The notes under the pieces: model-generated
Databases searched by the model: none
What the model was told of the DNA's origin: nothing
Seen by the model: only the letters and a program-made list of their open reading frames with translations
IMG/VR virus record: IMGVR_UViG_3300028840_008185
Coordinates: 248,001 to 312,000 of that record
Strand: one strand, 5' to 3'
Length of the DNA: 64,000 bases
Position numbers and translations under genes: made by a program
Shown: positions 3,931 through 35,661 of the stretch, piece by piece
Position numbering within the stretch: position 1 is the first letter of the stretch
Layout of the letters: each line of letters begins with the position of its first letter

Positions 3931-3931
3931 A

Positions 3932-7709: not shown

Positions 7710-7742
7710 GTCTTTCTCCACGGTGCAATTTTTCAAATCTAC

Positions 7743-8732
7743 TCATATCAAAGGCTCCGGATCTGGAGTCTGTACTCCTAACAATTTACAATCATGATCC
7801 ACCATGCGTTTCACAAGCTCTTCAAACTTCACTTTGGGCTCCCAACCTATGGCTTCTGTAGTGGCTGAGTAATCTCCGCAAAGCTCATCAACCTCGGCTG
7901 GTCTCATGAAGAAACGATTCACTTTCACATAATCCTTCCAATTCAGCCCGACGTGACCAAAAGCAACCTCGCAGAACTCCCCAACCGTATGCATCTCGTT
8001 AGTGGCGAACACATAATCAGCAGGTTTTTCTTGCTGTAAGCACATCCAGAACCCCTCAACGAAGTCGGGCGCATAGCCCCAATCTCTCTTAGCATCCAGA
8101 TTCCCCAGCTCAAGAACATAATTGGGGTCTTGCAAACATTTTGCCACGCCCATGGAAATCTTCCTTGTTACGAAGAGGGGACCACGACGTTCAGATTCAT
8201 GGTTGAATGTCACACCAGCACAGCAATACATCTTGTAAGCTTTCCTATACAGCCTGATGAAATGGTGACTGGCCACTTTGGCAATTGCATAAGGGCTCTC
8301 CGGAATAAGCAGCGTATCAAGGTTTTGTGGCGCAGGCGAAGACCCAAACATCTCAGAGGTGCTGGCGTGAAAGATTCTAGTTTGAGGTCTTAAGCAGCGC
8401 ACCACCTCTAGTATATTAATTAGCCCGCTAGTGTTAATATCGACAGTTGCAAGTGGCTGTTCAAAACTTGTATGGACATGTGACTGAGCAGCCAGATTGT
8501 ATATCTCATGTGGGCGAATATCCTCGATCAGCCTGAGCATTGACGAGGCGTCTGTAATGTCACCCTCTACAATGTCAATAACCCCGTCGAGGTGTTTGGC
8601 GTTTCCTAGATCTCTGGTGGCGTTTCTTCGCATAACGCCAACAACATTATAGCTTTTTTCGTGAAGGAAGTCAGCCAAATGGCTCCCGTCTTGTCCGCAC
8701 ACACCAGTAATCAAAGCGGTTTTTCTCTTCAT
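7743..8732 (-). CDS. gmd: GDP-mannose 4,6-dehydratase
   Basis: ALITGVCGQDGSHLA, YNLAAQSHV, ASTSEMFG, SPYAIAK, FNHESERRG, FVTRKI, LGNLDAKRDWG, RPAEV. Confidence 0.97.
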   Translation of the reverse strand: MKRKTALITGVCGQDGSHLADFLHEKSYNVVGVMRRNATRDLGNAKHLDGVIDIVEGDITDASSMLRLIEDIRPHEIYNLAAQSHVHTSFEQPLATVDINTSGLINILEVVRCLRPQTRIFHASTSEMFGSSPAPQNLDTLLIPESPYAIAKVASHHFIRLYRKAYKMYCCAGVTFNHESERRGPLFVTRKISMGVAKCLQDPNYVLELGNLDAKRDWGYAPDFVEGFWMCLQQEKPADYVFATNEMHTVGEFCEVAFGHVGLNWKDYVKVNRFFMRPAEVDELCGDYSATTEAIGWEPKVKFEELVKRMVDHDCKLLGVQTPDPEPLI

Positions 8733-9715
8733 CTTAACTCTCCTTTTAGAATAGCTGCTCTATTCTTAACATACCATTTAACCGTTTCATCGATTCCATC
8801 CTCAAAGGAAGTTTGGGCTTCAAATCCAAAATACTCTTTAGCCTTTGACACATCTAAACACCTTCTAGGTTGGCCATCCGGCATACTGGAATCCCATTCA
8901 ACTTTCCCCTTGAAATCAATTCGTTTGGAAATGATATTCGCCAACTCCTTAATTGTGATCTCTTTGCCAGATCCTAAATTGACCGGCTCATCACCATCGT
9001 ATTTCTCCATAGCATCGACTATAGCCGTTGCCGCATCTTTGACATACAAGAACTCCCTACTAGCACTTCCAGTGCCCCACAGCTCCACCTTATCCTCAGC
9101 CTCGTAAAACTTCCTAATCAGGGCTGGAATGACGTGGGAGTTTTGTAAATCAAAGTGATCATTTGGGCCATATAGATTCACGGGCATGAGAAAGATGCCA
9201 CGAAAACCCCACTGCTGCTTGTAGGTTTTAATCTGCATATAGAGCATTCTCTTTGTTAGGCCATAGGGAGCGTTAGTCTCTTCCGGGAAACCATCCCACA
9301 GGTTCTCTTCCTTAAATGGAACCGAACAATATTTTGGATACGAACAGACGCTTCCCAGCCCAACAAATTTGCGGAATTGGGGAGAAGGGAACGGCATCGC
9401 CTGCATTCTACTTTGGACATGCCAGGCAGCGTCCACAACGTTCGTATTCATGGCAAGATTTTCCCTCAAATAAGTAGCAGGGCTCGCTCTATTCGCGCCT
9501 ATTCCACCACACTTGGCAGCAGCATGAATTATGAAATTTGGTCGAACATATCTAAACACAGATTCGGTTTCAGCCTTGTCCAGCAGATTTATATCTTTTC
9601 TGCCCAATGCTATAATATCCTCATACCCTCTGTTCCTAAGCTCTTCCTGTATGTGGGTGCCCAAGAAACCAGTCGCCCCTGTTATTAGTATTCTTCGTTC
9701 ATGATAATCTGTCAT
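8729..9715 (-). CDS. fcl: GDP-L-fucose synthase
   Basis: TGATGFLG, AAKCGGIGAN, GSVCSYPK, TNAPYGLTK, NLYGPNDHFD, SHVIPALIRKF, WGTGSASREFLYV, DGQPRR; adjacent to gmd. Confidence 0.96.
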   Translation of the reverse strand: MTDYHERRILITGATGFLGTHIQEELRNRGYEDIIALGRKDINLLDKAETESVFRYVRPNFIIHAAAKCGGIGANRASPATYLRENLAMNTNVVDAAWHVQSRMQAMPFPSPQFRKFVGLGSVCSYPKYCSVPFKEENLWDGFPEETNAPYGLTKRMLYMQIKTYKQQWGFRGIFLMPVNLYGPNDHFDLQNSHVIPALIRKFYEAEDKVELWGTGSASREFLYVKDAATAIVDAMEKYDGDEPVNLGSGKEITIKELANIISKRIDFKGKVEWDSSMPDGQPRRCLDVSKAKEYFGFEAQTSFEDGIDETVKWYVKNRAAILKGELR

Positions 9716-9723
9716 TTTTCATC

Positions 9724-10416
9724 CTATTTGTGCCAAACCTGAATGTCAGGAACTGAATTCACTAACAAATCATTATCTATTTCACTTCTTGAGGCAACGA
9801 AAACCGCCCTTGTTACTGGATATTTCTTTTCTGCTTTCCAATCGAGGGGATATAGCTCTTCAAACTTGGGCTGCGTAATCGGCATATACACAAAATCCAT
9901 ATGCTTTTTCAATTGGTCAAAAACCCACCTCCTGGATGGCCGACAGGCTTCCCCACTGACGCTCTGGGTTGGGTCATATGTGAAATCTTTGCAATAGTCG
10001 ATGCTTTTGCCACTATCGTATGAAACTATAGTCTCCAAAAGCAAGAGTGAATCGCACCAATTACACATACGCTCAAGAGCACCGAACGGGTCACCAAGAT
10101 GATAGAGCAGACCGTAGGAATAAACTATGTCAAACTTCTCATCAAATTCCACATTTGGGGTGTCAACATCAAGCAAGAAGGCTCTGACGTGGGGAAATCT
10201 TTCCCCAAACACCGCCAGATTTTCTGGTCTCCCCTCTGTGCTGGTTACATCACAATCACGGTCAAGAAAAAACTGCGTGTGATCTCCAATCCCTGCGCCA
10301 AGTTCTAGAACGGTTTTGTTTGTTAAATCAAGCCCCAGGCTTGCCAGGTGCTCAAAACGCACCTTGTTTACTAGCTGGTATCGTGGGGACGTAAAAGCTT
10401 CTTTAGGATCAATCAT
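9724..10416 (-). CDS. Class I SAM-dependent methyltransferase
   Basis: VLELGAGIG, FDIVYSYGLLYHLGDP. Confidence 0.88.
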   Translation of the reverse strand: MIDPKEAFTSPRYQLVNKVRFEHLASLGLDLTNKTVLELGAGIGDHTQFFLDRDCDVTSTEGRPENLAVFGERFPHVRAFLLDVDTPNVEFDEKFDIVYSYGLLYHLGDPFGALERMCNWCDSLLLLETIVSYDSGKSIDYCKDFTYDPTQSVSGEACRPSRRWVFDQLKKHMDFVYMPITQPKFEELYPLDWKAEKKYPVTRAVFVASRSEIDNDLLVNSVPDIQVWHK

Positions 10417-11197
10417 TTAAACCTCCGTAGCCTATAATTTCGGATATGGGGCCAGCAACTCTGGCAATTTCATTCTTTCGCGATTGTGGCGCCGCTGGCC
10501 AAGGAGGCAGTGGATCACTAACAACCGTGGGGGTCTTAGAATGTTTTATAGACGTGAGTCGTTGCACAGCCGTAGGATCTGGTGCTGGAATCTGCAAGAA
10601 AGCACAAAGCTCAGCAACTCTTTTGCCCTTTATCATGTCTTCAAACTTGTATCTAAAAATTCGCTCTTCTGGAACATCTTCGAATAATTCAAGTATGCTG
10701 CTATTTACGAGTCTCCATGACCAAGCACACTTTTCTAGCTTGCTCATACTATCCCATTCATCGTAGTGTGGGTCACCTTTCCTGGGAGACGGCCACCACC
10801 ACATATTTTTCCCCGCGAACACCTCGTAGTCGAAAATGCCAGAATTATGAATGGATCTAATTTGTGTTCTTGGATCTCTCATCATATAAATGAATCTGGC
10901 GTCGGGAAAAACCTTAAAGAGTCCCTCCACGTAAAACGCAAGCATTCCATTTATTTCTCCAAAATCTTTGCCCGATTTCCACACTTCCTGGACAAGAGGA
11001 AGGCGCTCTTTTATAACAACCTCTTCGGCAGCCAACTCCCCTCTGTATACTTCCTGGTACTTGTCGAACATGGCCTTGGGGGAATCCTTGGTAATAATCT
11101 CATGATCGCAATACACAGAAGGCACCAAGTTCAAAATCTTGGCCAGAAGGTGCGTCCCACCATATCCATGACCGAAACCAAAAAATACCTTATTCAT
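10409..11197 (-). CDS. Sulfotransferase-family protein
   Basis: N-terminal FFGFGHGYGGTHLLAKILN (atypical 5'-PSB loop), HE, FPDARFIYMMRDPR..IRS (3'-PB), YKFED, LCAFL. Confidence 0.7.
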   Translation of the reverse strand: MNKVFFGFGHGYGGTHLLAKILNLVPSVYCDHEIITKDSPKAMFDKYQEVYRGELAAEEVVIKERLPLVQEVWKSGKDFGEINGMLAFYVEGLFKVFPDARFIYMMRDPRTQIRSIHNSGIFDYEVFAGKNMWWWPSPRKGDPHYDEWDSMSKLEKCAWSWRLVNSSILELFEDVPEERIFRYKFEDMIKGKRVAELCAFLQIPAPDPTAVQRLTSIKHSKTPTVVSDPLPPWPAAPQSRKNEIARVAGPISEIIGYGGLND

Positions 11198-12712: not shown

Positions 12713-12747
12713 GTCTATGCTCCTTTCATTTTTGCATTATTTTTTTC

Positions 12748-13740: not shown

Positions 13741-13758
13741 AAATTTTGGTCCTCTCCC

Positions 13759-14718: not shown

Positions 14719-14739
14719 GATTACTCCCTTATTTGTTTA

Positions 14740-16812: not shown

Positions 16813-16846
16813 ATTTATTTGACCTCTCTAGGTGGTATATTTGCCT

Positions 16847-17410
16847 TTATACTTTATAGCATTTTAGGTGTATAGCTGGATAAAAATTGATATTCTCTAG
16901 TTCTTCAAAGGACGCGAAACCATGCACAAATAATAAATCCTCTAAAGTTTGACGCGTATATCCACAATAATGATGATCCCACTTGGTTCTTTGTGTTCCG
17001 TGTATACAACGTATATACCATTCGTCATCGAATTCTGGAGATTCAATCCACTCCTTGGCAAATCCCTTCAGATCGGGAACTGCCACATAAAGCGAGCCAT
17101 GCTGTTTAAGAACTCTGTGCATCTCTTTAATATTTTTGTGTACTTCATATTGGGGGATGTGCTCCAAAACATGCAAAACTATTATCTCATCGACCTCACC
17201 ATCTTCGTAAGGAAGTTTTTCAATCTCTGCTCGAACGTCGGACACGACATACGTGGGCGACTCGCCCCAGTCATGTTTGTAATAGTTGTCCAGAGTTGTT
17301 TTATTATCCTCAAAATCCAAATTGTCGTTTGCTATAAAATCGGGAGCAGCATCTATATTTACGAACCCCTCAAGATATATAGTTCCACAACCTAGATGCA
17401 ATCTTAACAT
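16847..17410 (-). CDS. SAM-dependent methyltransferase (type 11-like)
   Basis: RLHLGCG, FVNID, LPYEDGEVDEI, HVLEHI, RVLKQHG, VPD. Confidence 0.9.
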   Translation of the reverse strand: MLRLHLGCGTIYLEGFVNIDAAPDFIANDNLDFEDNKTTLDNYYKHDWGESPTYVVSDVRAEIEKLPYEDGEVDEIIVLHVLEHIPQYEVHKNIKEMHRVLKQHGSLYVAVPDLKGFAKEWIESPEFDDEWYIRCIHGTQRTKWDHHYCGYTRQTLEDLLFVHGFASFEELENINFYPAIHLKCYKV

Positions 17411-17414
17411 AGAT

Positions 17415-19691
17415 TCACCTCCTAGCCCCTTTAAACATGGCATTATAGATGTGATTTATTGTAAACTCGTTGCCTTTCTTTTCCATAGCTTTTGCAAAGT
17501 TCTTGCTATTGGCAGAGAACTGTTCCCAGAGGCCCTTGTCTTCTTTCATCTTTCTGATTGCTTTGGCAAATAGAAGATAAGCATTTGGGTTCCAAACTAA
17601 AGAGCCATTAACCCCGTCGCTCACTACCTCTGATACAGCCCCAACATCTGAAGCTATTACTGGAGTGCCGCAAGTCATGGCTTCGAGAATGACGAGGGGC
17701 AATCCTTCCATATTTGATGGAAGTATTAGAGCATCAAAAGCCGCATAGAACTTCTCAACATCCTGTCTGTGCCCAACAAAGTATACATTTTTGAACTGCG
17801 CCGCTGCCTGTTTCAACGCGGCACCTTGTGGGCCATCTCCTACAAGCACGAAAGCCGCATCGGTGACTACCTGGGCGCACTTAAGTATCACTGCCAAATT
17901 CTTTTCTGGCGAAAGTCTGCCCACATAACCAACGACAAAATCTTCTTTCACGTCAAGATCTTTTAGTATTTCTTTTGAACGAGGAATCTTGAAACGATCC
18001 CAATCCACTTGTTGCGGGAGAACCGCCACGTTTTTATTTCCGTCTTTCAGGAGCTTTCTACCCATATGTCCGGAAACAGAGATGAGTGTAGCTACTAGCT
18101 TGTCTCTCGCCGCAACCTTGCACATAGAATCTTGCCACATAAGCTCGCTGTGAACAGTCTCGATTACGCGACACCTGAAGCCTTGCTGCCATGCCTGCCG
18201 CAACACGTTGTATACTCCAAAGCTATTGTAGAAATGGACTATACTGTAATTGTAGGATTCTACGAAGCACTTTAGGGCGTATCCTTTGCCCTGTCCCGAC
18301 AGATCTTGATATATAGCTCCAGTATCCTTGAATAGTTTATCTAATTCTTCACTAATGCCGGATATAAAAGCTATATGTGGCTCATAAATGCTTTTATCTA
18401 ATTTGTCAATTGTGTGCTTGATCCAAACTTCTCCTCCGCCGGCCATTTTGTATGGGACAATGTAAAGAACCTTTCTTTTGTCATTTATTCTACTACTCTT
18501 TTTGGGAATAGGTAAATCTAAAATCATCTGGGCAGCATTTTCCCAAGAGAACTCTTCAGTTGTCTTTTTCGCCGCCTCTTGGATTCTGGCCTTTTCTACG
18601 TCCGCGTTTTCATAGACCCGGCGCATCAATTCGGCACAGTGCCTCGTGTCTGGGTCGCCCACCACCGCATCTTTGTTGTGAACCCAATACTGCATGGAAG
18701 CAGGTGCTTGCATTTCACCCGTATTTATTAGTAGAGAGTTGTCATCATTGAGAAATTCAAGCTGGCCACCGTGACGTGGCGCAATAACAAGCATCCCGCA
18801 GGCCAAAGCCTCTAATCCTGGGAGCCAGAAGCCTTCGCAGGAACTCATGCTCACGACCGCATCACAGGCAGTATAAAGCGATCCAATGTCGGGAATATAT
18901 GTGTTGATAATCTCCACTTCTGGAGGGTTCTTTCTGCCCTTAAATGCCCGTTCTAACACGCTTTCTACGTCTACCTCAAACGGTTTGTCTGCATCGGGTT
19001 GCTTAAATTTTGTTTTCATCACAAGGCAGACATCATCATCGCCAGAAAAGGCGCTCAGATAAGCTTCTAGGACCCTCTCATGCAGCTTTCTGTGGTGAGG
19101 TATGGCGTTGTGTAAAAATTTCACTTTCTTTTCTGTTCGCAGCTTGAACGGAGTAATTTCTGGGTTGAACATATTGGTGTCTACGCCATGAGGCACTACC
19201 AACATCTTGCTCTCGGGTATGCCATTCTTGGCGAAAATATCATAGGAATATTGACTGGATGGAAGCACATAGTCAATTGCATGATGGTAGAGATGCCAGC
19301 CCGGAGGTAGAATAGAACTCTCAAAGTTCCATATTCCTGCGCGAGCTAGGGATTGTGGGAAAAAGCGCCTTGGAAATTGATAGAAAATTGTGTAAGCGAT
19401 CTCAAGGTCATACGGAAAGTTCTTGTCCGCCACTTCTGGCAACTTGTTTTGGGGAGTGGCTTTTATCTGCTTGCCATCTTCCATTAGGTAATCCACTGGA
19501 CCTTGGCTAAGTGAGCCGTGGTAACCAGGGACCAAGTATGGACGAAGATCGTCAGGAAAGTGTTCAAGATTGTTGGTGGACCTCATGTGAATTTCATGGC
19601 CCCCGATGTTCACCATCGCTCGGGCCAGATATTGCGAGACAAAGCTCCATGAGTGCTGAGTCCCTAGCATTGTATGCCATCTAACTTTCAT
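17415..19691 (-). CDS. Tandem double GT4 (GT-B) glycosyltransferase
   Basis: Domain 1: VVPHGVD, HHRK, EGFWLPGLEALACG. Domain 2: GGGE, VGRLSPEKN, EGLPLVILEAMTCGTPVIASDVG. Confidence 0.93.
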   Translation of the reverse strand: MKVRWHTMLGTQHSWSFVSQYLARAMVNIGGHEIHMRSTNNLEHFPDDLRPYLVPGYHGSLSQGPVDYLMEDGKQIKATPQNKLPEVADKNFPYDLEIAYTIFYQFPRRFFPQSLARAGIWNFESSILPPGWHLYHHAIDYVLPSSQYSYDIFAKNGIPESKMLVVPHGVDTNMFNPEITPFKLRTEKKVKFLHNAIPHHRKLHERVLEAYLSAFSGDDDVCLVMKTKFKQPDADKPFEVDVESVLERAFKGRKNPPEVEIINTYIPDIGSLYTACDAVVSMSSCEGFWLPGLEALACGMLVIAPRHGGQLEFLNDDNSLLINTGEMQAPASMQYWVHNKDAVVGDPDTRHCAELMRRVYENADVEKARIQEAAKKTTEEFSWENAAQMILDLPIPKKSSRINDKRKVLYIVPYKMAGGGEVWIKHTIDKLDKSIYEPHIAFISGISEELDKLFKDTGAIYQDLSGQGKGYALKCFVESYNYSIVHFYNSFGVYNVLRQAWQQGFRCRVIETVHSELMWQDSMCKVAARDKLVATLISVSGHMGRKLLKDGNKNVAVLPQQVDWDRFKIPRSKEILKDLDVKEDFVVGYVGRLSPEKNLAVILKCAQVVTDAAFVLVGDGPQGAALKQAAAQFKNVYFVGHRQDVEKFYAAFDALILPSNMEGLPLVILEAMTCGTPVIASDVGAVSEVVSDGVNGSLVWNPNAYLLFAKAIRKMKEDKGLWEQFSANSKNFAKAMEKKGNEFTINHIYNAMFKGARR

Positions 19692-22240: not shown

Positions 22241-25099
22241 TTATATTCCCAGTAAAGCTCTCATCTGGGATCTGCTTATTTCTCTGGTTGCGTTGGCGAA
22301 GCCCGCCCTCTTAAGATAAACAACAACCAATATCTTCATGCTTAGGGCTGGAAGTAAATTACCATAGCCATCGTTGTATAGATCATCAACATATATGTTG
22401 AGCAATGATGTGAGAGGATCGTAATACAACCCAACCAAATCTCTGATGGTGCTTCCAAACGTTACATTATACTCATTAGCTATTGATTGCAGCGCCGCAG
22501 AGATTTTAACCTTCCCCGAAGTGAAGTCTGAAATCTGCACGAAACTTCCATCAGCATATCTCATAGCATCTTGACCACTAGCAGTTAAACCACTGGAAGA
22601 TTCAGCCACAAAATTATCGAATAGTAGCACTCCAGAATATCCATCTAGAAACGTTGGATTTCCATATGAGTCTGTTATGGGAATGTCCAATGCTAGGTGG
22701 TTTATTTCAAGATCAACGGAGTAAAACGTTCCATCCGGATTCAAGATATTACCCGCATCAATGATCAGATTTCCCGGCACAAACCAATCATTTTGGCCAG
22801 ACGGCAAATCATCTGTAATATTTTCTGTGAAGGTTGTTGGCAAAAGCCTTCTCAAATCGAACACAATTAGATTGTCTGGAATCCAGGTTGCATAATATTC
22901 GATTTCCCAAGTTATACTTGGAAATGGCGTCGTGGTAAATCTTGAGCACGTTCCCGGAATATCGACGGTGGTAGTGAGTGGATCTAACAAACTTTCCACT
23001 TGAAGTTCCATTCTTGTGAAAGTAGAACCTGCTGGGAAAGTGCTTATAACGCCATTCACAAAATCCAATATCAGGGCCGAATCAGTAGCGTTCACTATGC
23101 CGTCCGCATTAACATCTGCCCTAAAGAATTCCGCAGCCGACATATATCCATCTATAATAAACTGCTGGCCATTGACGGTTGAAATATCGATGTTAGAGGA
23201 GCCGTATAAGGTGTTAAATGCAACGATAAGATCATTAACCGTGCTAACATCTGTCAAATTTACATCTCCATCCCCATTAACGTCTCCATAGGCATCAATG
23301 ACCTCCGTCTGACCAATTATCCTATACCTTTCCGAACAAGACGGTTCATCGGGGCTTAAAATAGAACCAACCCAATTATTTTGGGTCAGATCTGCATCAG
23401 GCACTAGCACATTGAATACATCTCCAACGGCCAACCCTGGATAAACGGTTGATCCCGTAATGCTACTAGCATTTCCTCTTGGATTCTGATCTCTTGCTCT
23501 GCCGAGAAGAACTGGGTCCGGATCGGAAGTCAACAAGGTGGTAAGAGAAGATTGATTGATTAAAGAAATCGCAGGAACGGTCGTCACTCTTGAGTATACC
23601 TGGTTTCCTGTTCTCTGATCCTGTTCTGGATCGGAAAACTCATTTGTGGCCTCTAGCAACACAAAATTATAGGTATCGCGAGTAACTGTGTAGTATGAAA
23701 GTGGCCCCTCTACATATGGAACCTCTGTGTTGGTCGCATCTGGAGCGATACGGGGCACCTCTAGGCCAAGGCCATCGTCATAACCTATTCCGTCGGAAAC
23801 CTTAACATAGCTGCCCTCGACACTGAACCACATATCGCTCGTGGTTACATTAATCCACTGCGAGCCGTCAAACACAGTCATATAGCTATTATCAGTTCTA
23901 TCGCTTGCCTCTTCTAGGAGTATATCACCTATGCTGGTGTCTCCAGATCGACCAACGGTGAACACATAATAATTTCCTGAAATTATTGGCGACCTAACCG
24001 GATCAGAGATTTCAGAACCAGTAAACACAAAATCCACTATCTGTGGAGTTCCATCTAAATGAATGCCTTGATTTATTAGATCAGCCTCATCTAATACAAG
24101 CTGAGCAATAATAGAAGGATCTGGATCAAAATCTATGGCGTCATCGGGCGTAGGAGAAACTGGGCAACTTACTTCAGTCTGGAGCGCATGCAGGGTCATA
24201 ACAATTGAACCAGACCACTCGTAGCCATCGTTCCCTGGAACTGCAGCCGAAAGTGGATCATATTCGACAGAAAGCAGAACAGAAATCTTTTGGATATTGA
24301 CGCCGCTGGCTTCAAACTTCTGGCCAATTCTGGTGGTTACGTCATCTTTAGGTATTTCCCGCTGTGTCACTGAAGCCAAACCAATGTTCAGATCAGAAAC
24401 TGATTTGTCGGGTCCAACAGCGTCTATAAGCATTTGAGAAATGCTCAGAGCCGCAGCAGGAATAAACGATCCAAAAAACTTGCTGGGTTGCCCAACTTGA
24501 GATACGACAACAGGATCCGGCGACACTTCCATAGACATAGCCTCACTAATGACACAGCGCCCGACCAAATTGTATCCATCCGCCGGGGAAGCAAGCTTCT
24601 CACTTCCATTAAGGTTTCCAGCAAAATTGTTGAAAAGAATACCCCTTATGCTTTTGTATCTGCCCCTGGTAACTTGAGTTCCGTTCTCGTTGAAGGTCAG
24701 CTCATCATGAACCAAATCACCACCAAAAGTATCTCCAATGATGGCGACTCGCGTCTGAGCCGCGCCGGCTAATCGCAAACCTGTTAGAGTGACTGCAAGC
24801 TGAACTCCCTGAACCTCATCAGAAACAGAGGTAAGGGGTGTGCCCACATATATGTTTTGACCATCAAACTGGTAACCGTCCAACAAGGTTTGCTGGGACG
24901 AGTTCAAGTCGCTACTATCAAAGATTTCTTGTCCCGTTTTAAACTCAGGAAGCACACCGCTCCCAAAGAAGTTGTTTTCGAGGGCAGCATCAATGCCTAT
25001 ATTTCTAGCCTGCTCGTCATCGAAGTCTTCCTTATCAACTTGTTGCCCGTCGTACCAATTGACCCTTTTAACATCAACGGATAATAGTTTCCTAACCAT
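22241..25099 (-). CDS. Baseplate-associated virion protein with an inserted dockerin-like domain
   Basis: N-terminal RVNWYDGQQV..EDF..EQ resembles contractile-tail peripheral/fibre-attachment proteins; paired GDVNGDGDVNLTD and ADVNADGIVNATD loops; follows the wedge genes. Confidence 0.65.
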   Translation of the reverse strand: MVRKLLSVDVKRVNWYDGQQVDKEDFDDEQARNIGIDAALENNFFGSGVLPEFKTGQEIFDSSDLNSSQQTLLDGYQFDGQNIYVGTPLTSVSDEVQGVQLAVTLTGLRLAGAAQTRVAIIGDTFGGDLVHDELTFNENGTQVTRGRYKSIRGILFNNFAGNLNGSEKLASPADGYNLVGRCVISEAMSMEVSPDPVVVSQVGQPSKFFGSFIPAAALSISQMLIDAVGPDKSVSDLNIGLASVTQREIPKDDVTTRIGQKFEASGVNIQKISVLLSVEYDPLSAAVPGNDGYEWSGSIVMTLHALQTEVSCPVSPTPDDAIDFDPDPSIIAQLVLDEADLINQGIHLDGTPQIVDFVFTGSEISDPVRSPIISGNYYVFTVGRSGDTSIGDILLEEASDRTDNSYMTVFDGSQWINVTTSDMWFSVEGSYVKVSDGIGYDDGLGLEVPRIAPDATNTEVPYVEGPLSYYTVTRDTYNFVLLEATNEFSDPEQDQRTGNQVYSRVTTVPAISLINQSSLTTLLTSDPDPVLLGRARDQNPRGNASSITGSTVYPGLAVGDVFNVLVPDADLTQNNWVGSILSPDEPSCSERYRIIGQTEVIDAYGDVNGDGDVNLTDVSTVNDLIVAFNTLYGSSNIDISTVNGQQFIIDGYMSAAEFFRADVNADGIVNATDSALILDFVNGVISTFPAGSTFTRMELQVESLLDPLTTTVDIPGTCSRFTTTPFPSITWEIEYYATWIPDNLIVFDLRRLLPTTFTENITDDLPSGQNDWFVPGNLIIDAGNILNPDGTFYSVDLEINHLALDIPITDSYGNPTFLDGYSGVLLFDNFVAESSSGLTASGQDAMRYADGSFVQISDFTSGKVKISAALQSIANEYNVTFGSTIRDLVGLYYDPLTSLLNIYVDDLYNDGYGNLLPALSMKILVVVYLKRAGFANATREISRSQMRALLGI

Positions 25100-25114: not shown

Positions 25115-28100
25115 TTATTTTATATAGCTCACAAAGGCTCTGGTGTGTCCAGGCCTCAGTCTGTTTATCAAATCTGTCAGTAATCCTTGAGCCAATGATG
25201 TGTCTATTAGCTCAAAAGTATCAATAACTTCTACCCAGAAGTCAAATATTCCTCTTGCAAGATCTCTCACAGTGGCCAGGTGCTCAACCTCAGTTGGGGT
25301 TGTGTCAAAATCTAGCAGAAGTCTCGTAAGCGCATCGCTGATAACTGGTTGTGCCGTGTTCACATTTCCAGTGTAGAGCAAATCCTTACCAATAAGCTGT
25401 CCTGGGCCACTTCCGCCCAAATAGGTAATTGTTCTCATTTCGCTTGAGAATCTCATATTGTCGAACCTAGCCATCGCCGTAAATTGGCCCGTGAAATCTG
25501 CGCCAATATGAACCGTATTGAATAGATCCTCTAGATTAATATCAGCGAGTATATTCCTAGCAGAGATAGTTCCAGCGGTCGCAGAACCCCATACTGTTGG
25601 TGAGCCATACAGATGGCCCTGGCCATAGAGCAAGCCTGTTCCGTAGCGAATAACGCCAGCCTCAGTTCCATCTACCATTAGAACCAGCCTATCTTGGTTG
25701 TCTATGTTGTTCAAATCCCAACCCACCCAGACTCGATGCCACGTATTCTTTTTCCAATAAACGGGCGCTCTTATCTGGAAGTCAGTTCCTGAAGCACTAA
25801 CCGACAACGTTAGGAAGCCAGTTTCACTCTTGTAGATGCTGAATCTATCCCCTTGGGCTGTAAGCGGCACATAAATCACATTAACGACACGAGAGTTTCC
25901 AGGCAGAGCCTGCCCAAGAGTAATGGTTATGCCGTCGCTAGCCAAACTACCTCCAGTGAAGTAGTTTGTATCACCACTGCCACCCGATATGGTCACCGAT
26001 CTCACAGTTCGAGCCCGAACTGGAAGAATTACACTAACGGCAGAGACCGCTATGGTTTCCAACTGTTGTTCAGGAGCTAAATCCACATAGAACCTTCTTG
26101 TCGGATCGTTATATGTATCCAGTATTGGGCTCACCCAAAACTCAATTGTGCCCTGATCGTTGCTGAATATGGATGCATTATCATATTGCAACGATTTTTG
26201 CTGGTTGAAGACTCCAGACTGGCCAAAACTCGAATTAACACTATTCTCACTCTGCCTAAAGGAATCGGAGAAGCTTGCGTAAAACGATGCGCTATTGGTC
26301 ACAGCGTCATTGAAATGGAATAGGCCAAGCGTTTGTATGCTGTCTTCGTATTCCTGAACAACGAGGGCGTCTGTTGTAATGGATCTTCCAGAGCTGGGAG
26401 TAAGTTCTCCACGGCCAGTATCATCTGAAACTTCGTCCAAAATACGCATCTCGTCTATTACCGCATTCGCCTGATTAGCTGAATTTAGATCAGAGCCGGT
26501 GTATAAATTATCTGGCATTTGTTCCCAAGGAACAGTCAAAAATGTTGGGAAGTCAACTTCATACCAACAGCTATGAAGCAGGAATGGCTGCCCACCACTT
26601 CGGGCAATTTCCAAAGTAATCAAACCGTTTGCGAAACCACTGTCGCCGTGCGAGGTGGTAAGTTGTCTCCAAGCCACATTTGAATAGGAATCGGCCCAAG
26701 TTGTGTTGAGAAAAATTGTGTCAGAGTCTTTAACGGTGCCCGACGGATCTAAATCAACATTGGTAATTGTATAACTGCTGGCTATGGAAGCCGGCGATGT
26801 AATATTGATAATCTTACCTATATCTTCGGCATCCCATCTGGAATAGGCATCTGAGAACTGGGCGGTTCCAACAAGCGTCTGGCCGTTTGCTCCAGCCTGC
26901 TCCTGAACTGACAAATGAACTTCCGCATATTCCCCATTATTCTCCTGCCAGTTTAAAGGATTGGCCTCTCTAACTTCCAATGTCCCAGCGGACAGCGTTG
27001 TATCAACTGGAGTGAACGACGCCAGAATATCCGTTATAGAAGTAAAAAAGCGAGTTGTAGTTTGACTACCAACAGAGGTGAAGGTCAAAGTTTCCATGCC
27101 GTAACCGTCAGTGGTATTTCCAGTTATTATAACTCTATTAAGCCCTGTGAAATCAAAATTGTCTCCGGATATAGTAGCTTTAAGCTTTCTGCCCGTTACA
27201 TTATTAGATGGTTGACAGAAATCAAATGCCCCAGCGACAAGCACTGGGATTATATGGCCACCAACGACTGTAGCCACCAGAGCGAAAACTCCCGGATCCA
27301 TTTCTACCTTTTCCACTATAATGCTTGTGATATTAATCTTGGAAATGTCCGTAGGCTGCGGCATTATTGTGTTTAGAATGTTGGTTTGCAGGTCTGGCCA
27401 AATATATACAAGCTGCCTACACCTAGCTGTAGTTAATCCATAAGAACGTAGAATAACACTATCACCGATACTTACACCATTATATATGTCAACGATTTCT
27501 TGGTAGCCATCCTCACTAAAGCCATAATCAGGAGTTAAAGTGTCTGGTGAATACAGCTCAGTCTCGGTGCCGAGAGCATCTATGGAGAATACACGAACTT
27601 TTTCGAAGCTTGGGTCACTTACCGTATCAGCCTCCATGGGATTTACAGAGAATCTTATGCCGGTCAAACTAGACACTGCTGTATAGGGAACGCCCGAGCC
27701 CGCTGGCCCAACTTCCATCCGCAGTTGATTTTCGCCAACAACAGCTCTCACAAATACGAAAGGAGATGTTTGAGTGTTGGTTCCGTCAGTCGTATCATCC
27801 AATATCATAAATTTACTTCCTACAACAACGCCCTCGGTCACAAACTGAGATCCGCCAGAGGTAAATAGATCTGAGCCAGCGACAGTTCTTCCGTCAAAGC
27901 CGCCGATGATTGGAGCGGTAGCCGAAGGTATTAGAATCTCACTAGCCTCGTCCATATATAGTGCCCCACTTGGCGGCTCCAAATATCCTCTAAATCTATA
28001 TGTATTGGGAACCTCTACGCCATCCACAAACAAGTGGAGTTCGTCGCGCATCTCTATTGTGCTAATTTTCCAAGATACTGCAATGTGATGAGTTTCCGAT

Positions 28101-31100
28101 CTTTCCCAATCCTGTATGTTTGTGCTCAACATTTTAAGGCGAGTGTTATCGTCATAGACCTTAAAGCGCAAAAATCCTTTGCCATCTTTGAATAAAGACA
28201 TGCGGCAACGATTTTCTGTGAAGCCAGTATCAAAGAAGTAATGTAGATTGTCAGATGTGAAATCTATCCCATCAAAACCAGCCAGGGCTCCGTTATAAGC
28301 GTCGTAGGCGTCGAAAGCCATATTCATGGAGTCATAAGCATCGACTATGAAGGCAAAGTTCACGGATTCATCAGTGGATCTCAGGGAGTCGTTTACTTCG
28401 TCAATACTATAGCCATCGTAGCCATCATAACCATCTGCGGTCGAGGCTTCAATTACATCGTAAAACTCGCCAGTCGTAGCCAAAGTTCCAGTGAATTCTC
28501 TGCTTTCGGCAATAGGTGCTCTAACACGCAATCTCCACTTATTAGAAGTGGAATCAAACCAAATGAAGTATCCAACCGCACTGTGCAGGTTGCTGGGTCT
28601 TCCCAACACGGAAGTATCAGTGCGCTCTAGCGTAAAAGGTATTTCAATTGGGTTCGCATTGTTCGAGCCGATATACACCTTGTCCGGTTGATATGTGCCC
28701 TCAAACTTTATGTCGAAAGTTATTGCAGCATCATTGTCTATACCGTCCCACTCAGGAATTACGAAAGCTTCCCAAGTTCCCTCACTGAACCTAAGATTGG
28801 AGTTTGCTGGAAGGCTTGCACTTTGTCCGTCAGTGTCGAGCAGCAAACCATCTCCAAACTTTCCAGGAACAAAAGTGGGCAATTCAGAATCAGTATTAGC
28901 GGCCAGTTCCATTTCCATCAGGTGGAAGAAATCTCTACCCAAAATCCACTCTAAGAACACAGACTCGATTATGTTCGGATCTATTTGAGTCAAGCTGCTT
29001 ACAAGCTGTTTAATAGATGGAATAGTTGGGCCCTTTGGAAACGTTTGCAGGGAGCCCTTCACCGCATTACGGTAGGTTTCTCTATCCAACAGCTCCGGAA
29101 TTGTGGAAAGCTCTTCTATGCCCGTGAGCACACCAAAGTTGTCCCTAAGGCTATTTCTCAATGCGCCATAGCGATATGTTACAAAATATGTTTCGTCTTC
29201 ATCTAGCGTGCTGGAAATGCTCCAGTCAAGAACGTTGTCACCATACTCATAGTCGATCAGTATCTCGTCGGAGGTATATGTGTAATCCAAATACATACGG
29301 CCAGAAATGTAGTCAACCAATACAGCCGCTCCAGCTCTAAGCTTCGCTTTGTATACAGCCTTAGCTAAAGAGCCTGCCGTGGCGGTTGTGGTCGAGGGCA
29401 GGTAAATCCTGTTATTGACGGCATCAATATATCCGTTGGTGCCCTGCGAAAAGTAATTTATAGAGTTGTTCAAGCCGCTTACATTGCTTGCCGAAACCAA
29501 GGCAACTAGGCTGCTTGCAAACATAGAGGCTATTCTCGCAGCGTTTACATATAGGCGAGAGCCATCAGTTTGAATGGTGAGACCCGCGCCGTCGTTGTCA
29601 TCGTCTATGGAAACGCCATCGGCACTCATTACGATTGTATTGCCTGAAGTTGAAGATACAACTGCACCCTCAGAAAAATCTATTGGATCTGGTCTAACCT
29701 GCAAATCGGTCACTTGGAAGATGTGATCTACGCGAGATATATTGTCTCTCACTGTGACCGTGTTTCCATTAGTTCCTGCTACAACCACAATAACAGTGCC
29801 ATCTGTCAACGTTCGCTCTCCAGCTGCTTCTAGATCTGGAGTTTCAACAGTGGTGTCAGTAACAGTTCCGACTCTAAATACTTCAGTATTGGAAACGCTA
29901 ACCGACGGGCTCCTGTAAATATCATCAACTCTTATGATATGGTCGTTACGAGTTTTAATCAAACCCCTTCTATACGAGGCATCTCCAATGTCGGAGCTTG
30001 ATCCAGAATTTCTAGCCAAATAGGCAACCCCGGATTCATAATCTACCATATAATCACCAAGCTGTTGCAACCTCTGAAGGTTGTCCGCTATGGAATCATC
30101 TGGGTCATAAAAGAACTCTCGCAGAAAAATATCAACATCAGAAAAGGTTAGGGTGGTGTTGAAACTCGAACCTATGAAGCTTCCTATGGCCGAGCCAATG
30201 TCTGTATCTGGAAGCTCTATTCTGAATGCCACAAATGTTTTACCAGTGATCGTAATCTCTTCGGTCACGACTATCTGCGCCTGAATTACTTGGTCGAATT
30301 CCGCAGCCTCTCGCACCACATCCACTATGTTTGGAGGAGTCACTGAAGAGAAGTATACTTGGTTCCCCGTGATTCTGGTTGGGGTATATATCTCTCCGGT
30401 TGTTTCATTAAATATTCTGAATACTTCTTCTACCTGGTTATTCTCGGTGACCAGACCAATGGTGTCAATTAATCTGTTCTCTACGCGCTCACCTATGACC
30501 TCAATGTGAGTTAGTAGCTCGTAATCAGTGCCTTCTGCATAGGTGTCCTCATAGTCGAACGTAACGGTTGCCGCATTGCCCCTTAAATCTCTGCCCGGCA
30601 GAGAAGCTATTTCGTTAAGATCAGAGAAGAACACATAATCTAGCCCTTCCTGGAATGTCTGTTTGAACTTATATGTGGCCACTGGAGGAACTGTGGTTGT
30701 TCCATCAGTCCCCGAGCCATCTACACCATACACAAACGCTTTGCCAGTAGTATAGTCGATTGAATATTGACCTGGCGAACTGGGCAAGCTGGCCTGATTG
30801 TATACAATCTCAGTCACAAACGCCGGGTGTTTTTGTGTTGGGTCAAAGTTTTTAGCAGGATCCAAGAAGGTGACTCCATTCAACCTGGGCACAGCACCAG
30901 TGGAATCAACTATGGGTGCATGGTCAAAGAAGAAAACTGTAGCAACCGCTTCTACGCTTTCTCTAACTATATCGACGGTTGTGGCCACCTCAACAGTGTC
31001 TGGGTCTATAATACGCCCAAGACGCTTATATTGATAAGAGATTACGAACTTATCATTTCCACTTGGAAATGGAAAAGTTGGACCAATGGCCGAGTTGGTT

Positions 31101-31983: not shown

Positions 31984-34900
31984 TTATCGATCCTCAACCT
32001 CGACGGTTACGGTTCCTGGAGCGAGGAACTCGCTCTTCTGCGCTGAAATGCTCAGCTTGGTCCCGCTTACGTTTGCTTTGTTGAATCTTGAAATTGTAAT
32101 TCTATCGAGACCTTCTACGTTATACGCATTGTTAATTATGTCTGAAGAATCTAGCGTTGTTCCCAAAGCACTTGCGCTCAGGGTGGCCGTAATGTTGTCT
32201 GCTACGTCTTGTCGCACCGTTGTCTCTCTATCTCTATAAGCAGTCGCTACAACAATTTTAGCATCTACATCAAGCTCAACCTTTGTAGCGCCCTTCACCA
32301 ACACATCAGCGGTAATTGGCCTATTATCTTCTACGACATCTGTGGCATCCACAATTAGCTTGTTGTATTCAAAATTTACTGTAATCCTTTCGTTTTCCTT
32401 AGGTGCAGTATAATCATAATCTGCGAAGTATGCAGCGTTTGCCTCTGGCTGATTGAAAGTATCAATCTGCATGGACCCCGAAATTGTAGCTCCAGAGTCC
32501 TGGAATCCAGATTGGCGGTTTATGGAAGATATATAGCCAAACACCTTATTGGTATAAGCGGCCCCATCTCTGGAATAAAACATATCTTCGTAGTCGTTCT
32601 CCTTGGCGTAGTAGAACGTAACTCTGAGATCAGTTCCAGTGACTATAGCATTGGTGCCGGTATTAGCAGCGGTAGCGGCCAATTGCACTTCGGTGCTAGT
32701 TAGAGTGGAAATCTCTATTGCGTCTGCACGATCCCAGCTCGAATCCTTGAGGCCATAGTTGGTCAAATCATATGTGGTGTCCACACTTTCAACCAGACCT
32801 GCAACCGTTAACGATACTTCTTCAACCGACTCCACTCTAACTACCGAAATGGTGCTTGGAATGACCGCCGTGTTGGCGAGCCCCTCCGCTACCCTTATTG
32901 GTATAGAAAGATCTAGGCCAGCAGAAGTAGCAGTATATATAGCGGTGACCTTATTAATGGTTGTGCCGACTATCCGTAAGGTTCCGTTTGACGGCAAGTT
33001 AGATGTAGTTAGCTTCAATATCGTAGGAGATCTGCGCTGGTTCGAAACGACAGTTGTTCCAGAGAACAGGTTTTGAACCGGCTGGTAACCATCAACTCCA
33101 ACAAAAGAATTGAACCCATCTCCAGAGATGGGCAGTGATGAAATATCAGAATCAGGAACCAGATTAAAGAAGTCTGCCACATAGTTTGCTCTTACCGTTG
33201 TTCCAGAAGTAACTGCGGTAGAGGGAAGAATTGTAATAATGTTATTTATCACTCCAGCACTGCCGTATTCATCGCTGGTCGAAATGTCAACTAGATTGTA
33301 TACAACCGTCACATTGTCACCAACTTGCGCCAAAGTATCCGATGGTAGGGTAATAAGCTTATTAGCGAATGTGCCGTCGGAAAGCGCAGTGTTGAATACT
33401 TCTGGGTCTCCAGTCAAAGTTGTGTCCGTGATGCTGTGGATGTTGCTTACGGCCCTAGTAACTTGAACGGTAGATTGAGCCCCCACTACGGCGGATTCTG
33501 AAACGAAAGTATTTACCGCAAGCACACGGGTAATTGGGTATTCTGTCGTCACAAGCAAGTTGTTGTAGGCGTCCAGGTTGGCAGTGGTAATCTCATCTCT
33601 TATGTAATTTGGAAAGCCCCATTCCACTGAATCCTGAGCCGTGTTTAAAACGTCCGCAGGGTCGAAATTATCAAAATCTGTATACTGATCATACTCGCGA
33701 ACCCAAATGTAATCAACCTGTAGAACGTCACTTGAAGTAGGCAAAGTTCTACCAGTTATGGTGATGCGGCCAGTTGGATTCAAATCTGCGGTGCTGTCTG
33801 GGTTCTGATCTGAAATCGTATATCTTTCGCCCGTAGTTAAGTTGAAAACACGACTCACGGTTTTTATTGGAGTGTGGTTCACAGTAACAGAACTTCTAGT
33901 GCTCCCGACTGTAGAGTTCTCATTCGTCACTTGAACATCCTGCCTAACTGCCGGAATATCAATCACATCGGTAAATGATAGGGCGTCAATTCCGTTGAAA
34001 GGCCCTTTAACAAGAGACTCATCAGTGAGTTCAATTTGAGTAGATGTCCACCTAAGCTTATCCAACCCAAACGCACTTCCACCAGCAGATCCTGTATCCT
34101 TGACCAACACATAGTTTCCCTGTAAGTTTCCAGTCTCGTCTAGGTATTGCTCAACGAAATTAGGGCCAGAAGAACTGCCGCTTACGGAAGTAATTTCATT
34201 TACGGGCTGCGTAGGTATTTCTTCTCCATCCACAAATACACCAAGTCTGCGCGAGTTGAGCGTCAGATTTGTGTCGGGAGTTAAGCTGCTCTGACCCAAA
34301 ATGAAATCATTGTCCGTATCGGTGGCCAGTTGCGTTCCGCTCTGATCGTAGTATATAAAGCTGTCTGAATCGCTTTGTAGGTTCTCACCCATCACATAGA
34401 TGTCCACCCTGCCACCAGTTCCTGGTTCCGATACTATTAGGTTTCCATCACTATCAGTGGTGGTGATAGTTCCATCTCTGATCATAAGGGGATCGCCCGG
34501 TTCAACCACCAAGGCGTCAATGGCATCAGCCAAACCTAAAACAAGGCTTCTGTAAGCCAATGAAGTTCCAACATTGGCCCCAGCAAAAGTGGCCAAAACC
34601 CTGGTTCTGTAGGAAGGATCGTCTTCCAAATCTGTGCCGCCTGTGAAAGGAGCGACATTGGTCACAGAATTCACACCAGAAACATTATGGTTAATCACGG
34701 AATAAGTTGAAATGTTGGCAGCAGAACCAATACTCTGCGCTTGGACCGACGCCTCAATGGCGAACTCATCGGTAATTCCAGCGGTGTCCAGCTCGTTACG
34801 CAGACGAGTTGCAGTAGCTCTCAGCGAGTTTGATTGAGTTTGTTGCACTACGATAGAAGAGACCGTAAGAAAAGGAATGCCATTTCTTGTGCGAACTACC

Positions 34901-35220
34901 GAGTCCTGAGGAATGGTAATGTCCGTATCTATTGACCTAAACGTAAACACCACTGTCCCGATTGCCCTGGTCCCAGTCCTTCTTGTGACGCCAAAGTTAG
35001 AGCCATAGTTGGTTAAATCCTGTCCAGATAGGTTCGAAACAGATTGAAGGGCAGAAATCTCCCTTAAAGCATCATAGATGTTGGACATCTGGAATGCCTG
35101 AGCATCGACAAACAAATCCCTGGCCACAGAATTGGGTTTGGTGTCCAAACTTGGTTGGGTCAACCTTAGTCGGTCTAGTATGTCTAATACTATATCATTA
35201 AAGCTTTTAAATGTAACCAT
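31984..35220 (-). CDS. Baseplate J/gp6-like wedge protein, enlarged to 1078 aa
   Basis: LSGQDL..YG.NFGVTRR.GT.A.G.V.F, G..AN, VTN..PFTGGTDLEDD.SYR.R, GRVDIYV and the C-terminal LG..L..SDII motif; follows a gp25-like gene. Confidence 0.88.
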   Translation of the reverse strand: MVTFKSFNDIVLDILDRLRLTQPSLDTKPNSVARDLFVDAQAFQMSNIYDALREISALQSVSNLSGQDLTNYGSNFGVTRRTGTRAIGTVVFTFRSIDTDITIPQDSVVRTRNGIPFLTVSSIVVQQTQSNSLRATATRLRNELDTAGITDEFAIEASVQAQSIGSAANISTYSVINHNVSGVNSVTNVAPFTGGTDLEDDPSYRTRVLATFAGANVGTSLAYRSLVLGLADAIDALVVEPGDPLMIRDGTITTTDSDGNLIVSEPGTGGRVDIYVMGENLQSDSDSFIYYDQSGTQLATDTDNDFILGQSSLTPDTNLTLNSRRLGVFVDGEEIPTQPVNEITSVSGSSSGPNFVEQYLDETGNLQGNYVLVKDTGSAGGSAFGLDKLRWTSTQIELTDESLVKGPFNGIDALSFTDVIDIPAVRQDVQVTNENSTVGSTRSSVTVNHTPIKTVSRVFNLTTGERYTISDQNPDSTADLNPTGRITITGRTLPTSSDVLQVDYIWVREYDQYTDFDNFDPADVLNTAQDSVEWGFPNYIRDEITTANLDAYNNLLVTTEYPITRVLAVNTFVSESAVVGAQSTVQVTRAVSNIHSITDTTLTGDPEVFNTALSDGTFANKLITLPSDTLAQVGDNVTVVYNLVDISTSDEYGSAGVINNIITILPSTAVTSGTTVRANYVADFFNLVPDSDISSLPISGDGFNSFVGVDGYQPVQNLFSGTTVVSNQRRSPTILKLTTSNLPSNGTLRIVGTTINKVTAIYTATSAGLDLSIPIRVAEGLANTAVIPSTISVVRVESVEEVSLTVAGLVESVDTTYDLTNYGLKDSSWDRADAIEISTLTSTEVQLAATAANTGTNAIVTGTDLRVTFYYAKENDYEDMFYSRDGAAYTNKVFGYISSINRQSGFQDSGATISGSMQIDTFNQPEANAAYFADYDYTAPKENERITVNFEYNKLIVDATDVVEDNRPITADVLVKGATKVELDVDAKIVVATAYRDRETTVRQDVADNITATLSASALGTTLDSSDIINNAYNVEGLDRITISRFNKANVSGTKLSISAQKSEFLAPGTVTVEVEDR

Positions 35221-35229
35221 TTATCAACC

Positions 35230-35661
35230 TCATCCTACAGTGAGAGAAAACGTCTCTTCCACTATAGTTAATTTTTTCGTTAATACCGAAACAGTAATTT
35301 GGTATTGTCGCGGATCTGTCTCGTCTCTGGTAACTGAAATGTCCCTAACAGCCGCTATGGTCTCGCCAGCAGAAACATATTGAAACTGAGCTTGTGATTT
35401 CTGCAAAGCAATCAAGTTGCTAAGTGTGTTGGAGATGGCGCTTTCCGCCTCTATCTCTGCCATACTGGCGTCTAAGACCTGGCCAATCATAGCTGAAGAC
35501 AGCAAGCTGCCATACCAGTTATGGAACCTATTGGAACCCAATGTTGTCAAGATTGCCTTAACAATATCTTGGACCAATTTCTCATTGTCCCTGACCGTCT
35601 GTATGGTCCCATCGGGATTGATTTTCAAATCATTGGCTTCAATTCTCAGATCAAAAGACAT
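35230..35661 (-). CDS. GPW/gp25-family baseplate (sheath initiator) protein
   Basis: 143 aa; KLVQDIVKAILTTLGSNRFHNWYGS.L pattern; immediately upstream of baseplate J. Confidence 0.8.
   Translation of the reverse strand: MSFDLRIEANDLKINPDGTIQTVRDNEKLVQDIVKAILTTLGSNRFHNWYGSLLSSAMIGQVLDASMAEIEAESAISNTLSNLIALQKSQAQFQYVSAGETIAAVRDISVTRDETDPRQYQITVSVLTKKLTIVEETFSLTVG

Follow-up and report, generated by a model that had tools for sequence, protein, structure and literature searches.

A D-(G/A)-Y tripeptide enriched in distal tail proteins of an uncultured jumbo phage clade is a candidate tyrosine glycosylation motif

The giant baseplate protein P0001 is encoded in a 64,000-nucleotide stretch of DNA (the window; bases 248001-312000 of the 318 kb IMG/VR virus record IMGVR_UViG_3300028840_008185) and carries a dense cluster of D-(G/A)-Y tripeptides in a loop of a LamG-like domain. 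Our analysis shows that DGY is under selection in the distal tail proteins of the whole uncultured jumbo phage clade to which this DNA belongs. On the sequence evidence, we tentatively favor a reading in which the tripeptide would be a short linear motif recognized by a phage-encoded enzyme, most plausibly a family 4 glycosyltransferase (GT4) carrying out tyrosine O-glycosylation. An identical protein from the same genome is present on a contig of 452,631 bp, and DNA of the phage is present in sediment and seawater metagenome runs; the source is an uncultured marine-sediment jumbo myovirus of ~450 kb. Searches with tblastn and megablast against 50,697 GenBank phage records returned no match and no cultured relative.

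Six D-(G/A)-Y units fall within 47 residues of P0001, a protein of 2288 amino acids (aa). The cluster opens with the triple DGYDGYDGY, whose minus-strand codons are GAT GGT TAT GAT GGC TAC GAT GGC TAT, and continues with a single DAY (GAT GCT TAT) and a DAYDAY pair (GAC GCC TAC GAC GCT TAT). The unit count and the codons of the triple, as given in a first-pass annotation made from the letters alone, are confirmed by the translation of the open reading frame (ORF). The whole protein contains nine units against 1.05 predicted from its composition, and in 20,000 residue shuffles of P0001, the most crowded 47-residue span held three units (in six of the shuffles), compared with the six observed. 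Tandem Repeats Finder (TRF) reports one array in the DNA of the cluster, 27 nt long, with a period of 9, three copies, and 83% matches. The first-pass annotation had also described the cluster as the densest instance of the motif, which holds within the window but not across the genome: a 672-aa protein encoded just past the window end has four units in 18 residues, and a 1635-aa tail protein 17-22 kb upstream of the window start (genome 225909-230816, minus strand) has 22. The latter contains Big_5 and BNR-like domains, and three of its units lie in N-terminal tandem repeats of ~24 aa, each of which starts with DGY; a domain with the pattern '...TPT.VDGYDGYH.V.D' is found in four proteins of the same block. 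A homolog search with this DGY-richest protein returned nine relatives only.

The enrichment extends well beyond P0001, whose cluster is a local, tandem amplification of the wider motif. In the tail block of this genome, taken as everything from 216 kb onward (33.5 k residues, with 58 k in the remainder), DGY is the most over-represented tripeptide, occurring 77 times against 7.2 expected from composition or 14.6 from dipeptide frequencies (z = 16), and DAY occurs 23 times against an expected 6-8. None of YGD, GDY, DYG, EGY, NGY, DGF, and DSY is enriched in the same block. The rest of the genome contains six DGY where 7.3 are expected, an excess appears only in the tail blocks when the genome is divided into 20-kb bins, and the enzyme cluster of the window (5483-19691) has no DGY against 1.5 expected. 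Units are most numerous in tail proteins of adhesin type that contain Big_5, BNR-like, and LamG_3 domains; the tail sheath has a single unit.

The same pattern is seen throughout the clade, for which IMG/VR holds at least 193 related loci; the pooled counts come from 80 related loci. DGY occurs 503 times in the giant proteins of these loci against 42.5 expected, and 645 times in the 637 other proteins against 52 expected, with EGY, NGY, DGF, and DGW at or below expectation. When 80 loci are anchored on the GT4 gene, DGY is found 874 times against 56 expected in the tail module upstream, an enrichment of ~15-fold, and 17 times against 32 expected among the enzymes downstream, a depletion of ~2-fold. 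The direction of enrichment is uniform across every locus. The downstream depletion would fit avoidance of a motif that is read in the cytoplasm, but the loci are not independent of one another. Outside the clade, 10 DGY occur in the structural region of T4 (75-125 kb), where 2.7 are expected; they are single sites dispersed over gp7, gp8, gp12, gp18, and gp27. The structural region of phiKZ has none against 2.7 expected. The tail proteins of myoviruses may have a weak general preference for the DGY turn.

The signal resides in the peptide. Of the matches to the DNA pattern GAY-G[GC]N-TAY, 100 are in frame, 1 and 3 fall in the two remaining frames, and 5 are antisense; this in-frame bias therefore points to selection at the peptide level. 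A signal in the DNA itself, such as a site, a methylation target, or a promoter motif, is ruled out by this frame test; the motif codons match background usage. Removing similar flanks leaves 467 distinct contexts, which rules out inflation of the count by paralogous or duplicated domains, and these contexts have no extended consensus except a depletion of K/R. About 22% of the units lie in arrays, with a neighboring unit within six residues. Like a glycosylation sequon, the motif is strict, short, and linear, free in its context, and selected as a peptide, and because such a context-free tripeptide has been re-created at hundreds of unrelated positions, we infer that it has an external reader. 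A collagen-like Gly-X-Y repeat was rejected as a description of the cluster, which has only three G-Y-D triplets, Ala in place of Gly in the other three units, and irregular spacing in homologs. In a literature search for DGY motifs or repeats in proteins and phages, the Asp-Gly-Tyr tripeptide came up only in unrelated contexts, and the paper on a 'moraphage' concerns a different, smaller lineage (PMC12619734).

Structure prediction supports the placement of the motif cluster in a loop inserted into a LamG-like sandwich. An AlphaFold2 (AF2) model of residues 1040-1400, built with 104 homologs, has a predicted local distance difference test score (pLDDT) of 84, and a second model covering residues 800-1800 (pLDDT 82) agrees with it. 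The predicted domain is a jelly-roll sandwich of two sheets that can be superposed on LG/LNS domains: its top five VIA-align matches are to agrin, neurexin, and laminin LG domains, with moderate Z scores of 7.8-9.8 over ~112-116 residues at a root-mean-square deviation of ~3 Å. Agrin G2 is the best of these (Z 9.8), and neurexin LNS and laminin LG domains score Z 7-9. A Foldseek search of the domain against the PDB gave nothing significant, and P0001 has no Pfam match at E <= 0.1, PF13385 (Laminin_G_3) included; a precomputed PF13385 match is present in many homologs. The location within a LamG-like region, proposed from sequence in the first-pass annotation together with a call for a structural model of the loop, is thus borne out by the prediction, in which the triple occupies a 20-residue loop between strands.

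In the homologs P0057 and P0069, whole extra domains of 262 and 575 aa, respectively, are inserted at this same loop, which appears to be a hot spot for domain insertion; the site must therefore lie on the surface. The inserted domains are flanked by DGY units, and P0069 has precomputed LamG_2 and toxin-receptor-binding-like Pfam matches somewhere in the protein. All nine isolated hot sites mapped onto the AF2 model fall, by DSSP assignment, in turns between strands or in short loops, and in at least four of them the Tyr is at or adjacent to the start of the next strand.

Comparison among relatives shows that the tripeptide behaves as a unit. A word search with residues 1040-1400 retrieved 114 proteins of 2.2-3.3 thousand residues, 31-81% identical (the window's own copy aside), on contigs of up to 471 kb. 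In most of them, the loop between the two conserved anchors measures 53-119 aa, and it contains from zero to eight D-(G/A)-Y units at variable spacing, the runs of distant relatives having 1-4 spacer residues. Copy number thus varies while D-x-Y is retained, the pattern that the first-pass annotation had proposed to look for by aligning homologs; neither of the two results that it named as refuting, tyrosines not conserved in homologs or a buried structural element, was obtained. Close relatives keep the triple and encode it with different synonymous codons. In contigs from three metagenome runs, the array has no indel and no substitution, although this DNA may itself derive from two of the runs (X1 and X2), so that only X3, of low depth, is independent, and contigs can hide rare variants. 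The synonymous differences within the array and between homologs, the scarcity of the DNA pattern outside the coding frame, and the absence of indels in the three runs uphold the earlier suggestion that selection acts on the peptide and that recent slippage did not produce the repeat.

An alignment of 89 full-length homologs places the motif in 131 columns. Among the 13 most-used columns, sequences that have the Tyr carry it as part of DGY in 44/49, 36/37, 17/17, 42/47, and 25/26 cases. Where the motif is missing, the hot columns hold unrelated residues, often S, T, V, or N, and Phe makes up ~4% of Tyr plus Phe. The three residues of the motif come and go together.

The most economical assumption is a reader that the phages themselves encode throughout the clade, and a candidate for it lies at the end of the tail module. 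The enzyme block of the window comprises a 758-aa double GT4, three methyltransferases, four more glycosyltransferases (a 690-aa enzyme and three of family GT2), a radical S-adenosylmethionine (SAM)/SPASM enzyme, a sulfotransferase, a GDP-L-fucose synthase, and a GDP-mannose 4,6-dehydratase. The N-terminal half of the double GT4 has orthologs in distant relatives that stand alone at ~365-405 aa, and both glutamates of the GT4 EX7E motif, the role of which has been described (PMC2943079), are invariant or nearly so. Of 43 loci long enough to show it, 38 have the GT4 ortholog after the giant gene, at a median distance of 3.4 kb, and at least two of the remaining five have it immediately past the stretch analyzed; conversely, the giant gene is upstream in 69 of 70 GT4-anchored loci. 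Genes of GT1 and/or GT2 cluster directly beside the giant gene in all 21 related records longer than 200 kb, and homologs of the GDP-fucose pathway lie at most 10 kb downstream of GT4 in 37-39 of the 80 related loci. In a near subclade (at least 55% identity; loci L007, L012, L010, L019, and L038), a second GT4 domain is joined to the ~390-aa GT4, and the fusion proteins measure 745-789 aa. D-A-Y is used in this same subclade, L012 excepted, which hints that acceptor preference may follow the enzyme; one evolutionary event accounts for the association, and it was not used as evidence. A complex prediction for the GT4 N-terminal half with the LamG domain scored 0.00, which gives no verdict and was used neither for nor against an interaction. 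From the synteny of GT4 with the tail module, it is plausible that the D-(G/A)-Y loop would serve as a glycosyltransferase acceptor.

Under the reading we favor, GT4 would act in the infected cell and attach a sugar to the hydroxyl group of Tyr where a D-G-Y turn or loop is exposed, recognizing the Asp at position -2; further transferases would then extend the glycan. Residues 1183-1229 would then form a multi-site acceptor array that places several glycans at the baseplate periphery. It is possible, if short of probable, that D-(G/A)-Y represents a previously undescribed sequon for Tyr O-glycosylation, written by GT4 on baseplate and fiber proteins across a clade of 300-480 kb phages, with a GDP-6-deoxyhexose pathway supplying the sugar.

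Several considerations weigh against this proposal. Modification of Tyr at DGY is a prediction only, and GT4 is tied to the motif by synteny only, both being present in every clade member, so that their co-distribution offers no contrast. The glycosyltransferase clusters of jumbo phages could instead target the host envelope or DNA. At several isolated sites, a strand opens with the Tyr, which may be partly buried. The loci are related by descent, and the pooled counts, especially the 2-fold downstream depletion, overstate their independence. T4 shows its mild DGY excess without known glycosylation. DNA encoding DGYDGYDGY is also scattered through many bacteria, in unrelated low-complexity stretches where, in about half of cases, the DGY frame is not the longest open one. 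The scan of cellular genomes for the triple array yielded no clue to the host; its hits include a family of Streptomyces proteins with a conserved 'YDAYDGYDGYDGYEE' stretch and an Acinetobacter ORF (L151) in which DGY is repeated 18 times in succession.

The main alternative to an enzyme-read motif is direct binding without modification, in which Asp/Tyr pairs make weak multivalent contacts to a polymer or receptor on the host surface: the Tyr ring would stack on sugars, the Asp would hydrogen-bond to hydroxyls, and the array would raise avidity at the baseplate rim. Antibody loops and lectin sites rich in Tyr, Gly, and Asp offer an analog for such binding. The restriction of the motif to distal-tail, adhesin-type proteins with LamG, Big_5, BNR, and beta-helix domains would suit this explanation, as would its position in turns and loops that are probably exposed, the LamG-like fold of the loop host, which is often used for ligand binding, and the differences in copy number and spacing among relatives, which resemble those of host-range surfaces. 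Binding of this kind, however, normally needs a three-dimensional context, yet one ordered tripeptide recurs in 467 unrelated contexts, with YGD, GDY, NGY, EGY, and DGF unenriched. The same tripeptide is, moreover, used across a clade from many habitats and presumably with many hosts, and the apparent depletion of DGY in the neighboring enzymes would be left unexplained. We consider direct binding a serious competitor, though on present evidence a somewhat unlikely one. A purely structural role, with D-G forming a tight beta-turn, the Tyr stapling the hairpin, and the loop array an inert by-product, seems to us improbable. The D-G pair is well known from type I' turns, the nine isolated hot sites all occupy inter-strand turns, with the Tyr leading into the next strand in at least four, and the mild excess in T4 tail proteins points the same way; but equally good turn formers (NGY, DGF, DGW, and DGV-type sequences) are unenriched or depleted, Phe replaces Tyr at hot columns in only ~4%, the 22% of units in tandem arrays sit in flexible loops with no hairpin, and the structural genes of phiKZ lack DGY altogether where 2.7 are expected.

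Two further explanations carry very little weight. The repeat could be a neutral, contingent simple sequence generated by recent slippage of a 9-nt unit, as its three-copy, period-9 TRF array, the low-complexity DGYDGYDGY stretches of many cellular genomes, and the varying copy number between homologs might suggest. This account is largely refuted: the copies are 83% alike and differ synonymously, homologs encode the same peptide with other codons, the three DAY units are set apart by unrelated sequence, isolated single units are enriched as well, and the contigs of the three runs (with only the low-depth X3 independent) lack any indel or substitution. The first-pass annotation had also proposed the sulfotransferase of the window, along with the glycosyltransferases, as a partner for the acceptor peptide, and Tyr O-sulfation would be in keeping with the acidic, K/R-depleted surroundings of the motif and with the presence of the gene in the same cluster. 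Its distribution excludes the sulfotransferase as a general partner, since the enzyme is missing from all 21 related large genomes while the enrichment of the motif is universal. Searches of these 21 records found the sulfotransferase in none by protein and in none above cut-off by family (one weak sub-threshold match), and it occurs in 1 of the 80 GT4-anchored loci. Its Pfam families are general, and its position among sugar-modifying genes makes a glycan acceptor the more likely one; the gene was probably acquired recently, for an enzyme that acts on the glycan rather than on the protein. Protein sulfation at the motif is most improbable. The radical SAM/SPASM enzyme was likewise considered as a maturase that might cross-link Tyr and was set aside, with matches in only 5 of the 21 relatives, one of them a clear homolog (E 2e-50) at a distant locus and the other four weak.

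The surroundings of the giant gene bear on the nature of its product, which the first-pass annotation called a wedge protein. Gene order agrees with that name: genes for a gp25-like and a gp6-like protein precede P0001, the order expected for the gp7 position, and Baseplate_J is followed by the giant gene in 78 of 80 loci. Sequence adds no match to gp7: scans of P0001 against Pfam and PHROG returned nothing, phmmer and profile searches against PDB sequences gave nothing useful, and a structure search of BFVD gave only matches of low template modeling score to generic virion structural proteins. Going by gene order only, we place the giant protein at the gp7 position of the wedge module. It resembles T4 gp7 in coming right after the gp25-like and gp6-like genes and in being a very large multi-domain protein, and it differs in being 2.2 times longer and in having no sequence or fold match (the models covering residues 800-1800).

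Coordinates of the features discussed are collected in Table 1. The gene for the 952-aa tail protein, a homolog of which is present in 69/80 and 77/80 related loci, is followed by that for a 735-aa tail protein and then by the enzyme block. Residues 604-677 of the 952-aa protein resemble a Ca2+-binding dockerin of type I (PF00404, 30.2 bits, above cut-off), immediately preceded by a DAY unit. Directly after the sugar cluster come a UvsW-like helicase (2398-3951, minus strand) and a tubulin/FtsZ-family protein (PF00091, E 2.5e-12; 3932-5386, minus strand), the latter PhuZ-like. The window also encodes a tail sheath and a tape-measure-like protein, and upstream of the sheath and tube genes it has two right-handed beta-helix proteins (PF13229; 56484-61106 and 61742-63973, both minus strand), candidates for tailspikes or depolymerases, each with three D-(G/A)-Y units.

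Table 1. Positions of the motif units, their host protein, and neighboring genes in the window
Feature	Position	Strand	Basis and remarks
gp25-like sheath initiator	35230..35661	-	Pfam PF10934 E 8e-7, below curated cut-off
gp6-like baseplate wedge protein (Baseplate_J)	31984..35220	-	Pfam PF04865 E 1e-25; PHROG 6 E 3e-37; directly upstream of giant gene
Giant baseplate protein gene P0001	25115..31981	-	ORF and translation; 2288 aa; 9 D-(G/A)-Y units
LamG-like beta-sandwich, about residues 1042-1332, loop host	27986..28858	-	AF2 and VIA-align
Variable insertion, residues 1170-1252, between conserved anchors TGEFY.V and FDGI.F.SD..HY.FD	28226..28474	-	Homolog comparison
DGYDGYDGY, residues 1183-1191	28409..28435	-	20-residue inter-strand loop, pLDDT ~70-80
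DAY, residues 1214-1216	28334..28342	-	Strand end/helix start; column is DGY or DAY in 55/89 aligned homologs
DAYDAY, residues 1224-1229	28295..28312	-	Helix end and loop, pLDDT 55-58
Isolated DGY, residues 1491-1493	27503..27511	-	Two-residue beta-hairpin turn; column DGY in 42/89 homologs
Isolated DGY, residues 1625-1627	27101..27109	-	Inter-strand loop
Isolated DAY, residues 1711-1713	26843..26851	-	Loop after strand
952-aa tail protein, 7 isolated D-(G/A)-Y units	22241..25099	-	Directly downstream of giant gene
N-terminal GT4 domain, residues 1-393 of 758-aa double GT4 (gene 17415..19691)	18513..19691	-	Pfam and NCBIfam GT4
Radical SAM/SPASM enzyme	12748-13740	-	Best NCBIfam likeness: cofactor/peptide maturases, far below cut-offs
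Sulfotransferase	10409..11197	-	Pfam PF13469; outside conserved system
GDP-mannose 4,6-dehydratase and GDP-L-fucose synthase genes	7743..9715	-	Pfam and NCBIfam

A tripeptide enriched ~10-15-fold in the tail proteins of hundreds of uncultured jumbo phages, with a conserved glycosyltransferase adjacent, provides a hypothesis both for the glycosyltransferases of huge phages and for contact between baseplate and host. Should Tyr glycosylation at the motif prove true, no earlier case would be known in which a sequon directs Tyr glycosylation on a virus particle, and the baseplate would be glycan-coated. A Tyr-glycosylation sequon would also constitute a new protein-glycosylation code, offer a portable tag for glyco-engineering, and make glycosylated virion proteins predictable from sequence alone. 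Were the motif instead a direct binding unit, DGY would mark host-contact surfaces of unannotated proteins. Under either reading, residues 1183-1229 provide a small, naturally occurring substrate or probe. Among the enzymes, GT4 is the first candidate, and the wider pattern behind the cluster was unexpected.

Among known systems, the closest parallels to the proposed function of D-G-Y are bacterial glycosylation sequons, namely the N-glycosylation sequon D/E-X-N-X-S/T and the Bacteroidetes O-glycosylation sequon D-(S/T)-(A/I/L/V/M/T). These share with D-G-Y a length of three to five residues, an Asp placed one or two residues ahead of the modified position (in D-G-Y, of the putative acceptor), freedom of context, and enrichment in surface proteins. 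In D-G-Y, however, the acceptor would be Tyr, and the writer would be a soluble cytoplasmic GT4 in place of a periplasmic oligosaccharyltransferase. The GT4 enzymes SdgA and SdgB of staphylococci offer a further likeness, as they decorate a tandem repeat of acidic and hydroxyl residues on surface adhesins, but their SD dipeptide repeats run for hundreds of residues and the acceptor is Ser; the NCBIfam matches of SdgA/SdgB to the GT4 of the window are weak and at the level of the generic family. Agrin, neurexin, and laminin LG domains resemble the loop host in their jelly-roll fold (Z up to 9.8) and in the variable inserts of their inter-strand loops, and they differ from it in having no detectable sequence relationship, the insert here being a Tyr/Asp repeat loop of 53-119 aa.

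Tyrosine is a usable O-glycosylation site in prokaryotes, as in S-layer proteins (PMC2943079), and transferases of tail-like machines can target it, as do PaTox and Afp18, toxins linked to phage-tail-like systems that glycosylate a Tyr of Rho (PMC4518317). Neither case involves a D-G-Y sequon or virion targets: S-layer proteins receive their glycans en bloc, outside the membrane and at two to four sites, and PaTox and Afp18 modify a single host Tyr. For virions themselves, glycosylation by phage-encoded glycosyltransferases has been described in mycobacteriophages (Freeman et al. 2023, as cited in PMC12619734). As summarized in that citing paper, glycosyltransferase genes there adjoin structural genes and the targets are virion proteins, as is proposed here; the mycobacteriophage glycans are carried on C-terminal extensions of capsid and tail-tube subunits, whereas the putative acceptor in the jumbo phages is a Tyr tripeptide scattered over distal tail proteins. 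By these analogies, the putative DGY system would come closest in function to sequons in which an acidic residue precedes the glycosylated one, and it would differ from the known systems in its acceptor residue, its putative soluble GT4 writer, and its restriction to the distal tail.

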